Virus record (IMG/VR): IMGVR_UViG_3300041402_000314
Span: 1-64,000 of that record
DNA: 64,000 nucleotides
Direction: 5' to 3' (one strand)
Shown here: positions 1,311 to 29,365 of the stretch, piece after piece
Layout of the letters: every line of letters starts with the position of its first letter
Position numbering within the stretch: the first letter of the stretch is position 1
The notes under the pieces: model-generated
Told to the model about the DNA's origin: nothing
Databases searched by the model: none
The model's input: only the letters and a program-made list of their open reading frames with translations
Translations under genes and position numbers: made by a program

Positions 1311-1566
1311 TTCTCTGGATTTCTACTTTAGCACCAGCTACCATGCTTTTCTTGAGACACTTACAGAGAATATGATTCCTAGATTCTACCTGTATAGCGG
1401 TATAACCTCTACCATAACACTTATTACAGTTGGCCTTTGGCTTAAACTTCTTTACGGTCTCTTCAAACTCCTTTGCTTCCAAGAAAGATGGAATAAAGCT
1501 TTCTACATCCATTAAGTCCTTAACTGCGTCCAACATACTATTCATTTTACTCGGTGCTTCTACCAT
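1300..1566 (-). CDS. hypothetical protein with CxxC zinc motif
   Basis: CNKCYGRG...CKC; overlaps neighbours in operon fashion. Confidence 0.6.
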   Translation of the reverse strand: MVEAPSKMNSMLDAVKDLMDVESFIPSFLEAKEFEETVKKFKPKANCNKCYGRGYTAIQVESRNHILCKCLKKSMVAGAKVEIQRNAK

Positions 1567-1981
1567 TTTCTTCCTCCGTTTTGTTTACATAATTGGCTAC
1601 ATCACCTAAAGTTGTACACCATTTACCGCCATTCTTTTCAATCATTTTACCAACCGCAGTGAGAGACCTGAATTGACCCGCATCAAAAAACTTAGTTCCG
1701 TTAAAGTCTGTTATAATAGGCTCGGTAAGAAAACAGAAAATAGTCTTCTCAGGTCTTTTATTCGAGTCATCCGTGACTTCTGCTATCGAATAAACTCCAG
1801 TCATTTCAGGAGTAATCACATATAGAACAAAATCACATGATTCTCTTTGTTTGATCTCTTCCGCCATACAATCTGGAGTCCAATCATCTACCACTGGATT
1901 GAAATAATCAATTGTAAGCATAGGTATTAATTTCTCTCTCCACGTACTGTTATTACATGTCCCTCCGAGGAAGACTTTCAT
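1547..1981 (-). CDS. nucleoside 2-deoxyribosyltransferase-like protein
   Basis: N-terminal KVFLGGTC..STWRE, YFNP, and SIAEV motif with catalytic-type Glu. Confidence 0.75.
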   Translation of the reverse strand: MKVFLGGTCNNSTWREKLIPMLTIDYFNPVVDDWTPDCMAEEIKQRESCDFVLYVITPEMTGVYSIAEVTDDSNKRPEKTIFCFLTEPIITDFNGTKFFDAGQFRSLTAVGKMIEKNGGKWCTTLGDVANYVNKTEEENGRSTE

Positions 1982-3680: not shown

Positions 3681-4351
3681 GTTATATTTTTCTTATTATT
3701 TCTTCTATTGTTAGCTTGTTCTTCATCCGTAGCCCATCTACAATTTGATGGTTCATAATTGCCGTCATTGTCTATCCTATCTATAGACAATCCCACTGGT
3801 CTTTCTCCCATATCTTCTAAGAAATTGATAATACCATCTTTAGATAACCATCTCTCACAAATTGTAATTCCTCTACCACCATAATCTTTATATGCTTTAG
3901 TTTTTTTATTATAGCATCTCGTTTTCATACCATGTAATGTGCGATATTCCACAGTATTTCTTTTTCCGTGAATAATCGAATGGGTATTAAGTTTTTCTTT
4001 ATGTAAACATCCACATGATTTAGTCGCTCCTGTTCTAACTTTGGTTGCTTGGGTTATTATATTACCACCACATTCACATTCGAACAACCAATCCATATGT
4101 TTATATCTACGAGGTGTTGGTTTAATCGCTGTTAATTTGTTAAACTTCTGACCCGTTATATCTCTTTTCTCTCTATCTATACACCCACATGATTTTATAT
4201 TACCTCGTTTGATAAGTTTCATGTCTTTAACAACTTCATTTCCACAATCACATTTTAATAACCAGAATGTCTTTTTATTTTCTCGGTAAGAAAAATCAAC
4301 AGCCGTTAATCTACCAAACTTTTGACTAGTATAATCTTTCCTAGGTGGCAT
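3677..4351 (-). CDS. HNH-type homing endonuclease (YGGRGI family)
   Basis: Two N-terminal (G/S)QKFxxLT..CxCG repeats, [39 protein letters not shown]. Confidence 0.85.
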
Positions 4352-4363
4352 AATTAATCCTTC

Positions 4364-5029
4364 TTATTTTTTCTTAGATCGTCTCTTATTGTTCTCTTGC
4401 TCTTTTTTGGTAGCCCACCTACAGTTGGAAGGTTCATAGTTACCATCATTATATATTCTGTCAATGGACAATCCTTCTGGTCTCTCACCCATATCTTCTA
4501 AGAAATTAACAAAACCGTCTTTACCTAACCATCTTTCACAAACTGTTATCCCTCTACCACCATAGTTTTTATATCCAGTTGCCTTTTCATTAGCACATCT
4601 CTGTTTCATACTACCCCAACTAATGTATGTTCTGGTGCGAATAGCACCATGTTTATAATTAGGATTTACACAACCACAAGTTTTCTTTTCACCTTTTCTT
4701 AATGCGTTACTTCTAGTGGTTATTTTATTCCCACAATCACATATACATTTCCAATATACCGCACCAAAATTATTTTTATGAGAAAATTCAACAGCAGTCA
4801 ATTTACCAAATTTCTGTCCAGATATGTCTAATCTTTTAGGTATACACCCACAAGATTTCGTAAATCCTCTTCGTAAAGAAGCTCCAGCAATATTTTTTTC
4901 ATTTCCACAATCACATAGGCATTTCCAGTAAGCTTTTTTATGTTTGCTGAAATGAGAAAACTTTATAATAGCCAACTTACCAAACTTTTGTCCAGTATAA
5001 TCTTTAACTCTATACGGTAGTTTGTTCAT
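4364..5029 (-). CDS. HNH-type homing endonuclease, tandem paralog
   Basis: Same architecture as 3677..4351 ([32 protein letters not shown]). Confidence 0.85.
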   Translation of the reverse strand: MNKLPYRVKDYTGQKFGKLAIIKFSHFSKHKKAYWKCLCDCGNEKNIAGASLRRGFTKSCGCIPKRLDISGQKFGKLTAVEFSHKNNFGAVYWKCICDCGNKITTRSNALRKGEKKTCGCVNPNYKHGAIRTRTYISWGSMKQRCANEKATGYKNYGGRGITVCERWLGKDGFVNFLEDMGERPEGLSIDRIYNDGNYEPSNCRWATKKEQENNKRRSKKK

Positions 5030-5822: not shown

Positions 5823-5928
5823 ACATTTATTTTAATGGGCGGTAAGTCTTGGCTCTTAACCGATGGCATATTCATACCTCCTCTTTAAAGTTGGTTGCAA
5901 ATGCACTTACCGCCCGATTTTATTTTTG

Positions 5929-6001
5929 TGCGTCTGGTGGGAGTCGAACCCACTACCGTTGGTTTTAGAAACCACGACTCTAGCCGTTGAGTTACAGACG
6001 C
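5929..6001 (-). tRNA. amber suppressor tRNA(CTA)
   Basis: Canonical spacing GCGTCTG-TA-ACTC-AACGGCTA-GAGT-C-GTGGT-TTCTAAA-ACCAA-CGGTA-GTGGG-TTCGACT-CCCAC-CAGACGC-A places CTA at positions 34-36; CCA not fully encoded. Confidence 0.85.
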
Positions 6002-17605: not shown

Positions 17606-17680
17606 TGGTGAGGCCACTCGGAACTGCCCCGAGATTGACTGGTTAAAAGCCAGATATTCTTCTAGTTGAATTATAGCCCC
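17606..17680 (-). tRNA. tRNA-Lys(TTT)
   Basis: Loop CTTTTAA; non-canonical T-loop GGCAGTT; CCA. Confidence 0.88.
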
Positions 17681-20402: not shown

Positions 20403-20476
20403 TGGTACTCCCTGATGGTACTGCCCCACCGCTTATTGGATGTAAACCAATCGCACTACTATTATACTAAGGGAGC
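20403..20476 (-). tRNA. tRNA-Val(TAC)
   Basis: ATTGG-TTTACAT-CCAAT; T-loop GGCAGTA; CCA. Confidence 0.87.
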
Positions 20477-20482
20477 AAATAT

Positions 20483-21394
20483 TTAATCTGTCTTTAATCT
20501 AAATCTACCCATTTCAGGACAACCTTCTCTCTTGAAATGAGTTCCTTCATACCTATTTATAACACCTTTTACTACCTTACCATCGACACAATCTGAATTC
20601 TTAAGAGCCTCATATATCTTAACGGCTTCTGGAGAATACATTATGTCATTTTTGGCAAGTCCTAATTCCATTCTCTCCATTACCATGATAGCATCAAAGG
20701 TCTTATAATCACAGCCTAGTTGTGCCTCATCGGTATTATCATCGGTCACACCAAGTCCATCACTAGGAGCCTGAGTTATGATATCTTCTCTAACACCCAA
20801 TAACCTAGCTATCGTAGGTAGTTCAAATCCCTTGAATATATATTGTATCGGTGCGAGGTCTCCAACGTCTCCGTGTAGTGTCCAGAAACCAGCGAGATAT
20901 TCACTGTAATTATCTGTACTCAGAACCAGACCATCATTCAGTCTAGCCATATCATAGAGCGTCATCATTCTCAACCGAGCTTTTATATTTCCCTGTCTGA
21001 TAGCACCATGATTAATTTTACCTGCTATGATGTCGTTATGTCTTAACACATTAGGTATAAATGTTTCCATAGTTTCATCTAACCAATGGACGCTATCATA
21101 GACAGTACAATGATTTGCACCAACCCATCCAGCCTGTTCACTATGCTTATCCGTTGTCGAAAGAGGTATATGGAGTCCGATCAAAGGAACGCCTATATAT
21201 TTCTCCTGACAAAGTGCAGCTATAACCGCACTATCGAGGCCACCAGAAACACCAACAACCAAAGATTTGAGCTTATTCTTATATACATAATCAGATACAA
21301 ATCTTCGCATTCTTCCTATGATGTCTTCAGCTTGCTCATCACTTAAGGTATATTTTGGTTCAACTGCTTCGACTAATCTCTTCAACTCAGACAT
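20483..21394 (-). CDS. nadE: NH3-dependent NAD+ synthetase
   Basis: VGVSGGLDSA PP-loop, GNIKARLRMMTLY, STDNYSE, FWTLHGD, APSDGL, TDEAQLG. Confidence 0.92.
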   Translation of the reverse strand: MSELKRLVEAVEPKYTLSDEQAEDIIGRMRRFVSDYVYKNKLKSLVVGVSGGLDSAVIAALCQEKYIGVPLIGLHIPLSTTDKHSEQAGWVGANHCTVYDSVHWLDETMETFIPNVLRHNDIIAGKINHGAIRQGNIKARLRMMTLYDMARLNDGLVLSTDNYSEYLAGFWTLHGDVGDLAPIQYIFKGFELPTIARLLGVREDIITQAPSDGLGVTDDNTDEAQLGCDYKTFDAIMVMERMELGLAKNDIMYSPEAVKIYEALKNSDCVDGKVVKGVINRYEGTHFKREGCPEMGRFRLKTD

Positions 21395-23280: not shown

Positions 23281-23309
23281 ATTATACTACATCCTTATCT
23301 GTTTGTCAA
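23281..23309 (-). promoter_or_regulatory. sigma70-type promoter
   Basis: TTGACA-17-TATAAT. Confidence 0.8.
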
Positions 23310-24181
23310 GTCCTATATAGACAGTTTTTAATAATATATCCCAACACATCATTATCCACCAACCGTTTAGCCATCGGAATATTCTGTGTATCTATAGCAC
23401 TTCTAACCACTGTAGACGAACAATCTATTGGAGCATCGGCATCTACCAGCATATGAGGTTCTTTCAGGAACCACGAGCTACTTGTTATATTCAAATCTTC
23501 TTCAGCTCTCGGAACAACTACAAAGGGTATTCTTCTTTCCAGTTCATCCCAACCAACCCATTTATTGGTGGTCATAGCATTATCAGCTCCCATTATGAAA
23601 GAGAACTGGTAATTATCATACTCAGGGTCATCGAGGATGCGATTCACGCAGTTTAAAGTCTCTCCCTTGAGCATGTGCCTTATTTCATAATCAAAAGCCT
23701 TTATACGTCCATCTACGGCTACAGCCATCTCTACCATTTTCAATCTTTGTTCTGGAGAAGTCATTTCCTTTCCGAACAGATGTTGGTAGCAAGGCATCAA
23801 CCAGACTTCATCAAATTTACCTGTAGCATCCAGAACCAATTGAGCTGTTTCTATATGACCTTTAGTAACAGGGTCAAAAGCTCCACCCAATATGGCTACC
23901 TTAGTCTTACGGCCTAATGATTTATATTGCTGTTCTCTTCTCTTTATCTTCTCATGAGCCATAGCTATGACATTAGATGCGTCCTCGCCCATTTCAGAGA
24001 TACCAGCTAGAACAGAACAAAGCAGATCGCCATATTCTTCTTTGAGATGATTTATATCAAGAAATCTACCGACCTCTTCTGCTTCTCTCTGGATATCCTT
24101 AACTCTTTCCGTTAATGGAGTCCTACCGAACATCTTTTGGAAGAGTTCATAATTCCTGTCTTGAAGGTCTTTTATACTCAT
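23306..24181 (-). CDS. nadD: MazG-like domain fused to NadD/NMNAT nucleotidyltransferase
   Basis: N-terminal REAEEV...EEYGDLL (MazG-like); C-terminal AILGGAFDPVTKGH (HxGH), FIMGAD, CSSTVVR. Probable ATG at 24181; the ORF track extends to 24283. Confidence 0.85.
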   Translation of the reverse strand: MSIKDLQDRNYELFQKMFGRTPLTERVKDIQREAEEVGRFLDINHLKEEYGDLLCSVLAGISEMGEDASNVIAMAHEKIKRREQQYKSLGRKTKVAILGGAFDPVTKGHIETAQLVLDATGKFDEVWLMPCYQHLFGKEMTSPEQRLKMVEMAVAVDGRIKAFDYEIRHMLKGETLNCVNRILDDPEYDNYQFSFIMGADNAMTTNKWVGWDELERRIPFVVVPRAEEDLNITSSSWFLKEPHMLVDADAPIDCSSTVVRSAIDTQNIPMAKRLVDNDVLGYIIKNCLYRT

Positions 24182-24355
24182 AGTTAATCCACAAATATCT
24201 CTAAAGGTTTTATCAGATAAATCCCTAATCATAGGCATTAATATTTTAGGAATTTCTTCATCCACAGTTAATCCCACTACCAACTATCATCATTATTAAT
24301 CCAGCGATAATGATGATAGTACCAAATATCAATTCAAACAGTCTCCATTTGTCCA

Positions 24356-26666: not shown

Positions 26667-26742
26667 TGGAGCCTCCAGAGACAATCGAAATCTCATCTAT
26701 GGGTTACAAATCCATTGTTCTTGCCACTTGAACTATAGAGGC
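26667..26742 (-). tRNA. tRNA-Thr(TGT)
   Basis: Loop TTTGTAA; GCCTCTA/TGGAGGC-T-CCA. Confidence 0.9.
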
Positions 26743-26751
26743 ATATTTTTC

Positions 26752-26941
26752 TTATTTTATCCTATCTCTCAATTCTAACAACTCAAAATGAGTCTTGCGA
26801 AGTGTTTCTCTAAACTTCTGATTATACTCTTCAGAACCCCCAACATTCTTCAACCACGATCTCTGATAAATTTTTAATCGCAGACTGAAGGTGTGCTTTA
26901 ACGTCATCCAATCTTTCATCCGCTGTTGTAGTAACACTCAT
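26752..26941 (-). pseudogene. frameshifted small protein gene
   Basis: GGGAG RBS + ATG at 26941: MSVTTTADERLDDVKAHLQSAIKNLSEIVVEECWG, then a stop; removing one G from the G5 run (26837-26841) continues as SEEYNQKFRETLRKTHFELLELRDRIK. Confidence 0.6.
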
Positions 26942-26959: not shown

Positions 26960-27400
26960 ATTGGTCATAGTGATACGGACTATGACCGATCTCTATTTTT
27001 CACTACCGCACTAGCTACACTACACTTAGTAGTAGTCACCCCTTATAGTCAGTGTTATCAGCTTCTATGGCTTATTGCGTCTCTATGAGAAGACCTACCT
27101 CCACTTTTACCCTTGTTAGGGTGATAACCTTTCTATATCGTACAGGGATTATTCCGTCACGTTAATTAGAGTACGCATCTAATATCGTCTATTCCTACCT
27201 ACTCTTTTTTCAATAGGAACGGAAAGATTAATGGTGTTCAGGTCGCTCTATTGTCTCCTAGTCAGGTATTAAAAAAGAACCACTTCCTTTCAGAGAATCG
27301 AACTCCAACATCGTTTTGCCTAGAATTTATTGATGTCTCCTACCCATTACAAGAAACCATTCTACTTAGATACGATAGCCCTCAATGCACCATTAAAATT
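26960..27400 (-). ncRNA. candidate large structured ncRNA (~440 nt)
   Basis: No credible ORF; consensus promoter at 27416-27444; several long-range stems and a TTCGATT T-loop hairpin. Confidence 0.55.
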
Positions 27401-27415
27401 ATTCATTATTAAACC

Positions 27416-27444
27416 ATTATAACAAATTCCTTTTCATTTGTCAA
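27416..27444 (-). promoter_or_regulatory. sigma70-type promoter upstream of the large ncRNA candidate
   Basis: TTGACA-17-TATAAT. Confidence 0.85.
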
Positions 27445-27452
27445 GAACTATT

Positions 27453-28511
27453 TTACATTTGTTCTTGTTGGAAGAAATAATCTCTTACTACCTTAGAGAC
27501 TTTGTTGTTTACTTCCTTGACATCCAGACCAGCATCGGTAATGATGTCGAGGTCTTCCTTTACGATATCACCAATAACCCATCTGATGAAATCTCCCATT
27601 CCTTTACGATCTATCTCTCCGCCATTCAGAGTATCGAATGTTTCCTGTATGCCTTGCTCCATACGGAAAGCAGGAGTAATCTTATTTACCACTTCATTAA
27701 CAAGATTCATTTTAGCTTCGTCTACTTTAGGCAGCTTCTTTACTTTACTGGTAGAATGCTTTTCTCCCTTGACCTTAAAGCGAAAGTCATTGCCGTTAAA
27801 AACGCCTTTCCAGACCACACCCTCACCAACACCTTCATTTCCTAATTGGAAGGCCACAGGGCATCTTTCCTCGACTTCCAAAGTGATTTCATTCAACTTA
27901 TTCTGAAAAGCCTCTGGTTTATTGAAATCTATTTTTATTTCGAAGGTAGGAAATTCATCTATAAAGTAAATGTTATGATCATTAATTTTACTACCTCTAT
28001 TATTCGGACATACTTTACTTAAGTCTAACCAGAATCCATCTTCTTCATCATCATGAGACGTTATCTTAACATCGAAGATAACGAACATCTTATCAAGCCC
28101 ATTGACCCCAACACCTTTCTGAATAGACCCACCGCTGACTTCCCCGAAAATAGAAATGATGTTATTAATAGTATCGATATTAAAATCCTTAATTATTTCA
28201 GCTACGATATTATTGAATGAAACTTTTCTCGCATGTACGAAACAAGAAAACCCACAATTATCTTTTTCTGGGGTGATGATATTTTTCCTAGATTGCGTCC
28301 AAATACCACTTTCAGCATTAAAGCATACTGCACCATTACTTCCATGAATTTTAGTGGTTCCTGTTAATTTCAGAACTGGTTTCGGTCTCATCCCATCATA
28401 TACGGGTTCACCATCTTCTCCTATTCCTACAAAACTAGCAGAATGGCTTATATGTTTAACAATATTTCTATACTGTTCTATACTTGGGTACTTAATAAAC
28501 TTCTTTTCCAT
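27453..28511 (-). CDS. ATP-dependent RNA ligase (Rnl2-like)
   Basis: KYPSI, TKIHGSN (motif I KxxG), IFGEV, VIFDV, GEGVVW, FKVKGEKH. Confidence 0.88.
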   Translation of the reverse strand: MEKKFIKYPSIEQYRNIVKHISHSASFVGIGEDGEPVYDGMRPKPVLKLTGTTKIHGSNGAVCFNAESGIWTQSRKNIITPEKDNCGFSCFVHARKVSFNNIVAEIIKDFNIDTINNIISIFGEVSGGSIQKGVGVNGLDKMFVIFDVKITSHDDEEDGFWLDLSKVCPNNRGSKINDHNIYFIDEFPTFEIKIDFNKPEAFQNKLNEITLEVEERCPVAFQLGNEGVGEGVVWKGVFNGNDFRFKVKGEKHSTSKVKKLPKVDEAKMNLVNEVVNKITPAFRMEQGIQETFDTLNGGEIDRKGMGDFIRWVIGDIVKEDLDIITDAGLDVKEVNNKVSKVVRDYFFQQEQM

Positions 28512-28579: not shown

Positions 28580-29365
28580 ATGTTTCATTATGTTTATAGA
28601 ATAACCAATATAACGCCTCGATTAGAAAAATATTATATTGGAGTTCGATCTTCTTTAGATGAACCAAATGATGATAATTATTGGTCTTCATCGAAATATT
28701 TAAAGGAAGATATTAGTACCTTTGGTTTATCAAATTTTAAAAAGAAAATCATCAAAATTTTCAACAACCGAAAAGAAGCCATTGATTTCGAAATCAAAAT
28801 TCAAACTAAATTACAAGTTCATCACCATCCCTTATTTTATAATAAATCTACACAACCTTCAAATAAATTCAACAATCAAGGAAATCCAGAAATTATTAAA
28901 AGAAAAGTTCAAACAATGCAAAATACTATCATTGATGGTAAAACACTTTATCAAATAGCCGTCGCTAAAGGTATTGAAACTAAAAAGACAAAAATTTTAC
29001 CAAATGGTTTAACTGTATCAGAAAATCAAGTAGCTAATTTTATCGCCAATTTAGATATTCCCGATTCTAAAACTGGATTGACTCTTAGACAAAAATTACG
29101 GAAACCAAAAAACAATACATCTAATTATACTGGCAATCCAAAAACAGTCATTTTATATGATAGTAAAGATAATATCAAACATACTATCAATGATGGATTC
29201 CAAAAATACTGTCTTTTGTATAATTTACCATATACTGCTTTCAGAAAATCATACGGCGAACAAATACCAGTATATGAAAATATAACAAATCCCCGTACTA
29301 TTACCCTATTAAAGAACAAAAAATATTGGCAATATAAAGGTTGGTATGCCATTTTAAAGGTTTAG
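28580..29365 (+). CDS. GIY-YIG (Seg-like) homing endonuclease
   Basis: HYVYRITN...YYIGVRS, YWSSS, AIDFEIK, FYNK; opposite strand to neighbours; TATAAATA late promoter upstream. Confidence 0.85.
   Translation: MFHYVYRITNITPRLEKYYIGVRSSLDEPNDDNYWSSSKYLKEDISTFGLSNFKKKIIKIFNNRKEAIDFEIKIQTKLQVHHHPLFYNKSTQPSNKFNNQGNPEIIKRKVQTMQNTIIDGKTLYQIAVAKGIETKKTKILPNGLTVSENQVANFIANLDIPDSKTGLTLRQKLRKPKNNTSNYTGNPKTVILYDSKDNIKHTINDGFQKYCLLYNLPYTAFRKSYGEQIPVYENITNPRTITLLKNKKYWQYKGWYAILKV

Follow-up and report, generated by a model that had tools for sequence, protein, structure and literature searches.

The window analysed here, the first 64,000 nucleotides (64 kb) of the 204-kb IMG/VR virus record IMGVR_UViG_3300041402_000314, carries an Rnl2-type RNA ligase gene followed on the minus strand by a perfect sigma-70-type promoter, a stretch of roughly 450 bases with no gene for a protein, a small ORF, and tRNA-Thr (UGU), the first tRNA of a long array (Table). 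The ligase gene ends 9 bases before the promoter, and its product matches Pfam PF09414 (E = 4.5e-11) and has tblastn hits annotated as RNA ligase 2. ARAGORN finds 28 tRNAs and Rfam 3 more, giving an array of 31 tRNA genes, all on the minus strand between 2919 and 26742, and none lies upstream of the element. One of these tRNAs has the anticodon CUA and is labelled 'Pyl' by ARAGORN; it is an amber suppressor, so the phage may read through or recode TAG. The record has 35% G+C and encodes gp46/47-like SbcCD, a family B DNA polymerase, UvsX, a helicase and ribonucleotide reductase. The polymerase is at most 36% identical to those of cultured T4-like cyanophages, and the phage is therefore a deep-branching T4-like phage.

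Table. Features at the head of the tRNA array and elsewhere in the window. Positions are those of the window unless another sequence is named.
Feature	Position	Strand	Description
SegE-type GIY-YIG homing endonuclease gene	28580-29365	+	just upstream of the ligase gene, on the opposite strand
RNA ligase gene	27453-28511	-	Rnl2-type, 352 aa
Promoter	27416-27444	-	TTGACA at 27444-27439, 17-nt spacer with TG (extended -10), TATAAT at 27421-27416; 12 of 12 matches
Proposed RNA gene	26963-27409	-	about 447 nt, from the inferred start of transcription (near 27409) to the end of the terminal hairpin; both ends inferred
5' domain	27228-27396	-	long irregular stem, P1 and its extensions
P1	27396-27388 with 27236-27228	-	TTAATGGTG/CACCATTAA; continues inward as UU/AA, AGG/CCU and a further covarying stem
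Variable distal module	27249-27377	-	within the 5' domain
T-loop-like hairpin	27292-27306	-	GGAG, TTCGATT, CTCT; inside the variable module
9-mer repeat, copy 1	27334-27342	-	TAGGAGACA
9-mer repeat, copy 2	27252-27260	-	TAGGAGACA
Middle domain	27152-27224	-	three-way junction closed by P2, with arms P3 and P4
P2	27224-27219 with 27157-27152	-	TTCCGT/ACGGAA
P3	27219-27192	-	hairpin, A-rich loop
P4	27188-27159	-	hairpin, loop UGCGUAC
3' domain	27006-27145	-	P5-P10, two nested three-way junctions
P5	27145-27140 with 27011-27006	-	
P6	27137-27133 with 27048-27044	-	
P7	27128-27122 with 27060-27054	-	GTTATCA/TGATAAC
P8	27122-27109	-	hairpin
Junction strand	27109-27099	-	TAAAAGTGGAG
P9	27099-27069	-	variable hairpin
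Junction strand	27069-27061	-	CATAGAAGC
P10	27036-27019	-	hairpin
Invariant 21-nt block	26998-27018	-	GTAGCTAGTNCGGTAGTGAAA; overlaps the 3' strands of P10 and P5
P11	26987-26979 with 26971-26963	-	GGTCATAGT/ACTATGACC; terminal 9-bp hairpin, conserved loop CCGTA(T)C
Motif before the small ORF	26955-26948	-	AAAGGGAG
Small ORF	26752-26941	-	ATG at 26941; split by a frameshift in the window
tRNA-Thr (UGU)	26667-26742	-	first tRNA of the array
Cytidylyltransferase-like protein with a weak MazG match (possibly NadR-like) and an NAD synthetase gene	23306-24283 and 20483-21394	-	both embedded among the tRNAs
tRNA, anticodon CUA	5928-6001	-	
Three tRNAs found by the Rfam tRNA model but not by ARAGORN	2919-2989, 17609-17680, 20406-20476	-	
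Near-perfect promoters, 16 sites	e.g. 1066, 3652, 9928, 15927, 23281, 27416, 44307, 62618		TTGACAAA...TTTGnTATAAT
CCA-adding-type nucleotidyltransferase	G000:C1:69383-69754 (phage genome, outside the window)		PolyA_pol domain, 443-aa frame
tRNA-Leu-like element in relatives	L010 ~1308-1515; L007 ~2752-2865; L004 ~4225-4260		acceptor, D arm (GTGGCGGAAGATAGACGC) and T arm, separated by 100-200 nt of extra sequence
Nested tRNA-like element in relatives	L002 ~4404-4535; L008 ~1440-1575		closing stem of 9-13 bp ending next to a GCGAG-TTCGAGT-CTCGC T arm

The observation made in the initial annotation, of an ORF-free, multi-domain RNA candidate with its own consensus promoter at the head of the tRNA array, is confirmed. 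Each element that it listed (the promoter, the absence of an ORF, three long-range stems, the 3' hairpin, the T-loop hairpin and the repeated 9-mer) is present at the stated coordinates on the minus strand. There is no minus-strand ORF of 25 aa or more between the ligase stop codon and the ATG of the small ORF. The promoter is one of 16 near-perfect sites of the TTGACA-17-TATAAT type in the window, against 1.1 expected by chance; all are co-oriented with the genes, about ten lie inside the tRNA array, and together they look like the early-promoter set of a T4-type phage. The 9-mer occurs in 3 copies in the window against 0.73 expected, and 4 of 100 shuffles reach 3, so by itself this repeat is weak evidence. 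However, both copies in the element are kept as TAGGAGAC in L011. Each follows a TGGTT(T)CTT motif, which by eye looks like a partial internal duplication.

We found homologous sequence at the same place in about eight related metagenomic phage contigs. A blastn search of 50,697 phage records returned no match to the region, and a peptide-pattern scan of IMG/VR for the ligase found nothing, but a search with the ligase protein gave homologues of 60-79% identity, whose contigs we refer to as L002/L003, L004, L005, L006, L007, L008/L009, L010 and L011. In each contig that reaches far enough, the order is ligase, conserved promoter block, element and then tRNA-Thr (UGU), often followed by tRNA-Tyr. 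The promoter block is 79-96% identical over about 50 nt in L002, L004, L007, L008, L010 and L011, whereas L005, L006 and a further contig, L022, keep a TTGACT promoter at this place. In L022 an ORF follows the promoter and the contig ends before the RNA could appear. A profile of the core finds exactly one copy in the phage genome and one in each of these loci, but none in three more distant ligase loci (L013, L014 and L016), which also have no tRNAs nearby. The element therefore goes with the head of the tRNA array rather than with the ligase, and its position directly downstream of the ligase gene, pointed out in the initial annotation, is conserved gene order in the close clade only. Pattern scans for the invariant block and the junction motifs in IMG/VR, JGI metagenomes and GTDB genomes gave only three chance matches, all in unrelated coding DNA (L012, L017 and L018). 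In these collections the family is seen only in this phage clade. The public runs that hold the sequence or close relatives are marine-sediment and cold-seep metagenomes, and no RNA sequencing run holding the sequence was listed, so both ends and the stability of the RNA are inferred.

The region around the promoter is a hot spot for insertions. Relatives have different ORFs inserted around the promoter, none of which matches Pfam, and tRNA-like elements lie between the promoter and the RNA in L002, L007, L008 and L010. One of these, also located in L004 (Table), is tRNA-Leu-like and may be an intron-bearing or otherwise expanded tRNA. The other, in L002 and L008, is a nested element with a second T-arm-like hairpin and a D-arm-like stretch inside. 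Neither is called by ARAGORN or Rfam. Downstream of the RNA, relatives have one intact gene of 62-68 aa with no Pfam match, which is absent in L005. In the window this ORF is split by a frameshift in a run of five G near 26835 into a 36-aa piece and a 61-aa frame, which could be an assembly error or a real pseudogene. It is not part of the RNA.

The element has no conserved reading frame but is under purifying selection. The longest stop-free stretches fall in different frames and places in each of 8 homologues, variable alignment columns show no three-base period (53, 54 and 51 of about 92 each in the three phases), and indels are not multiples of three. The core is 64-81% identical to the window, about the same as the ligase gene as a whole (70-80%) and far above ligase third-codon positions (54-65%).

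Comparison with relatives supports an elaborate fold. RNAalifold on seven sequences predicted 62 pairs, 18 of them with compensatory double changes. We then set up a hand model of 62 pairs in 11 helices on an 8-sequence alignment. In this model 91.6% of 465 cells form a standard pair, against a mean of 86.6% and a maximum of 88.8% in 1000 column shuffles, and 17 pairs have double changes, against a mean of 7.0 and a maximum of 13. When the 3' partner was slid by 1-3 columns, 30-50% of cells paired and 2-4 pairs had double changes. Two columns were used twice in the model, at the P2/P3 and P7/P8 boundaries, a small error that does not change the picture. The covariation rests on few independent events, because there are only about eight distinct homologues, all from one phage clade, and related sequences can beat column shuffles without any structure. 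In addition, the folding energy of the single sequence is not unusual (z = -0.96), and the support comes from comparison with relatives, not from thermodynamics.

All three long-range stems proposed in the initial annotation (P1, P2 and P7) are supported. For the 5' closing stem, RNAalifold on 5 sequences independently predicts 23 pairs, 8 with double changes; the three in P1 come from L005, in which P1 keeps pairing. P2 has 84% of cells paired, and relatives have TTCGT/ACGAA, so the window carries one extra C-G pair on both sides. P7 has double changes in L008 and in an independent contig of a sediment run, X3. The best-supported helices are P8, P10, the base of P9, P7, P6, P3 and P1. P8, the base of P9, and P10 pair in 100% of cells, each with 2-3 pairs showing double changes. 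In relatives, P8 changes from ACCCT/AGGGT to ACCTT/AAGGT, ACCAT/ATGGT or ACTCA/TGAGT, and P10 changes from ACTAC/GTAGT to ACCAC/GTGGT, ATTAC/GTAAT or AATAC/GTATT. P6 also has double changes, and in L004 it keeps all five pairs through two double and two wobble changes. P3 pairs in 89% of cells and is fully exchanged in L004 (TCTCTCCA/TGGAGAGA), and the two parts of P4 pair in 92% and 82% of cells. P11 pairs in 95% of cells and has one A-T to G-C exchange in L004. Logan contigs of four other sediment runs carry further compensatory variants not seen in our loci: in P7, G-C becomes A-U and U-A becomes C-G, and in P10, C-G becomes U-A and U-A becomes C-G. These contigs show natural variants and say nothing about expression. 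P5 is the weakest helix, with one-sided changes only and poor pairing in L006. A competing pairing explains the same changes, that of the P4 loop (CGUAC) with GUACG at 27143-27139, which becomes CAUAC with GUAUG in L005. We could not establish any pseudoknot: a pairing between the P3 loop (AGAGTA) and the P4 stem (TACTCT) is not kept in L004 or L010, and one between the P10 loop and the 3' tail is seen only in L005.

The element is modular. The distal part of the 5' stem differs among the window/L011/L007, L002, L005/L010 and L004, with breakpoints at the same two places, and a contig of run X3 skips 27248-27378 with 120 other letters in between. In the window, L011 and partly L007, this module holds the T-loop hairpin, identical in L011 and reading TTCGAAT in L007, and the two TAGGAGAC copies, the form in which both 9-mers are kept in L011. 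The T-loop hairpin is present only in these three because the module that holds it is replaced in other relatives. By eye, three pairs in the module differ on both sides or improve between the window and L011. L008 has an 85-aa ORF in place of the 5' domain. The middle domain is missing or decayed in L006, the most distant relative, which keeps only the 3' domain, with its nearly invariant junction strands, and P11. The 3' domain is therefore the essential core. The 21-nt block is identical in all seven relatives that reach it except at N, and it appears to resemble the D-arm and D-loop consensus of tRNAs. No T-run follows P11 in the window, L004, L005 or L006, whereas L002, L008 and L010 have T5 two or three bases after it. 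In L005, where the RNA is about 360 nt, P11 ends 9 nt before tRNA-Thr.

The element does not match any family in Rfam 15. Searches with gathering thresholds on the window, at E<=10 on the region and at E<=1 on 8 homologous loci returned only tRNAs and chance-level hits. In the region, DUF805b scores 14.4 bits over the A-rich P3 loop (gathering score 35.6) and RAGATH-7 scores 17.5 bits over the ligase 3' end (gathering score 111.8). These searches covered RNase P RNA, tmRNA, group I and II introns, OLE, raiA, HEARO, 6S and riboswitches. RNase P, group I intron and T-box readings were considered because of short look-alike motifs (GGGTAAAAGTGG, CATAGAAGC and GATATAG) and were dropped because no covariance model gives any hit. 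Neither ARAGORN nor Rfam calls a tRNA or tmRNA within the element, which has only the isolated T-loop hairpin. The GOLLD model (RF02032, gathering score 150 bits), run alone on the whole phage genome, gives a single chance hit of 10.2 bits at 187545-187612 and none at this locus. The ROOL model (RF03087, gathering score 99.1 bits) gives no match in the genome at E<=10, although the control genomes gave no match either. The interpretation offered in the initial annotation, a relative of GOLLD and ROOL or a new large ncRNA class, is thus partly supported: the first alternative is not supported and the second is.

Based on these results, we conclude with good confidence that the element is a gene for a stable, highly structured non-coding RNA of a family not yet catalogued. 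Our analysis shows a modular element directly after a consensus early promoter at the 5' end of the tRNA array, without a conserved reading frame, conserved about as well as the neighbouring protein gene, and with helices that keep pairing through compensatory changes; it also shows that the distal 5' stem is swapped among relatives while the 3' multi-junction domain and a 21-nt single-stranded block are nearly invariant. Expression, processing, stability and function, in contrast, are inferred. We postulate that host sigma-70 RNA polymerase transcribes the RNA early, as the first part of a multi-gene precursor that, with no T-run after P11 in the window, should run on through the small ORF into the tRNAs, and that the enzymes that cut tRNAs out of this precursor also release the RNA. 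RNase P cutting at the 5' end of tRNA-Thr would release it on the 3' side, and in L005 such cleavage would set the 3' end; processing of the tRNA-like elements that some relatives carry upstream would act on the 5' side, so that in L002, L007, L008 and L010 the RNA would be bracketed by tRNA-type processing sites. P1 and P11 would then protect it from exonucleases, so that it accumulates and acts in trans, and its invariant junction strands and loops would form a tertiary core that binds a partner. We can only tentatively suggest that the partner lies in tRNA or translation biology, with the RNA acting as a decoy or platform for tRNA-directed enzymes, or as a self-assembling particle of the kind found for GOLLD and ROOL. 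The grounds for this weak guess are the fixed place of the RNA in the array, its tRNA-like pieces, and the phage's own tRNA repair and maturation genes (Rnl2 and the CCA-adding-type enzyme).

The main rival, which we consider unlikely, is that the element is a cis-acting leader of the tRNA-array transcript. It could be a processive antiterminator of the put/EAR/boxA kind, making RNA polymerase resistant to Rho or to hairpin terminators across a long untranslated array, or an attenuator using P11 as a terminator. It is the first transcribed element after the promoter in the window, with 21 kb of mostly untranslated tRNA genes downstream, untranslated operons such as rRNA operons need antitermination, and P11 is followed by T5 in three relatives. 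However, at 360-450 nt with 11 helices it is far larger than known antitermination RNAs, the promoters inside the array mean that read-through from the first one is not required, P11 lacks a T-run in the window and three relatives, and we found no conserved alternative pairing that would switch P11 on and off. ORFs or tRNA-like genes are also inserted between the promoter and the RNA in five relatives without loss of the RNA. The inferred bracketing by tRNA-type processing sites, the size and the number of helices fit a free, stable RNA better than a leader.

The remaining alternatives seem very unlikely. A very divergent member of GOLLD or ROOL would share the setting beside phage tRNAs and the GOLLD layout, but the covariance models give no hit here at E<=10 or in 8 homologues at E<=1, and the element is about half the length of GOLLD. 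Decaying debris, made of pseudo-tRNAs and remnants of mobile insertions in a recombination hot spot, without a function of its own, would fit a slot that gains and loses ORFs and tRNA-like genes, and a variable module with a T-loop hairpin and a partial duplication, but not the conservation of the core, the double changes in helices or the invariant block. That the element encodes one or more small proteins is the remotest possibility. Gene callers placed a 71-aa gene over part of it in L004 and a 34-aa gene in L006, but no frame is open in the same place in different homologues, there is no three-base periodicity, indels break the frame, and the L004 product has no Pfam match. 

We also speculate, although we consider it doubtful, that this could be a new class of large phage RNA with a biochemical job of its own. 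It might recognise or process tRNAs, since it is rich in tRNA-like pieces and invariant junctions and sits in the array, it might be a ribozyme, or it might self-assemble into a particle as GOLLD and ROOL do. If any of these holds, it would help a T4-like phage take over or protect translation in its host.

Bacterial and phage RNAs above about 300 nt with many conserved helices are rare, and those understood so far are mostly ribozymes or large assemblies. GOLLD and ROOL, the two known large RNAs tied to phage tRNA islands, still have no known function. A third, unrelated and much smaller RNA in the same genomic setting, in a T4-like phage, suggests that carrying a large structured RNA with the tRNAs is a recurring solution. 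The compact form of about 360 nt, with a core of about 200 nt, would be easier to probe, crystallise or image, and the strong sigma-70 promoter of the RNA means that the RNA could be expressed directly in E. coli.

Several known RNAs invite comparison. Bacterial Y RNAs (YrlA) have a long closing stem plus a tRNA-like module (PMC4201824). Some are encoded next to an RNA ligase operon. However, we found no Ro60 (TROVE) gene in the 204-kb record, which is estimated to be 89% complete, and no Rfam match, and the tRNA-like module here is not conserved among relatives. Phage T4 encodes two stable small RNAs of unknown function inside its tRNA gene cluster, species 1 and 2 (rnaC and rnaD; NC_000866), and rnaC carries a T-arm-like 3' part. 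They are 139 and 119 nt and lie at the 3' end of the cluster, not at its head. There is no credible sequence similarity: the best nhmmer match in the T4 region (E = 0.22) lies on the opposite strand in the tRNA-Ile gene, not in rnaC or rnaD. ROOL is a phage or prophage RNA near tRNA islands, with a complex fold, no known protein partner and unknown function (PMC12286853); the RNA described here is shorter. GOLLD is a large, many-helix RNA of phages and prophages, often next to tRNA islands, with unknown function, a conserved 3' region and a variable 5' region that can hold tRNAs, and sometimes with tRNAs in its linker (PMC12286853). At more than 800 nt it is much longer than the present RNA, and no shared sequence motif was found. 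Here too, the 3' domain is the conserved part, and the 5' domain is swapped among relatives and carries a T-loop hairpin, a likeness to GOLLD of layout and setting, not evidence of homology.
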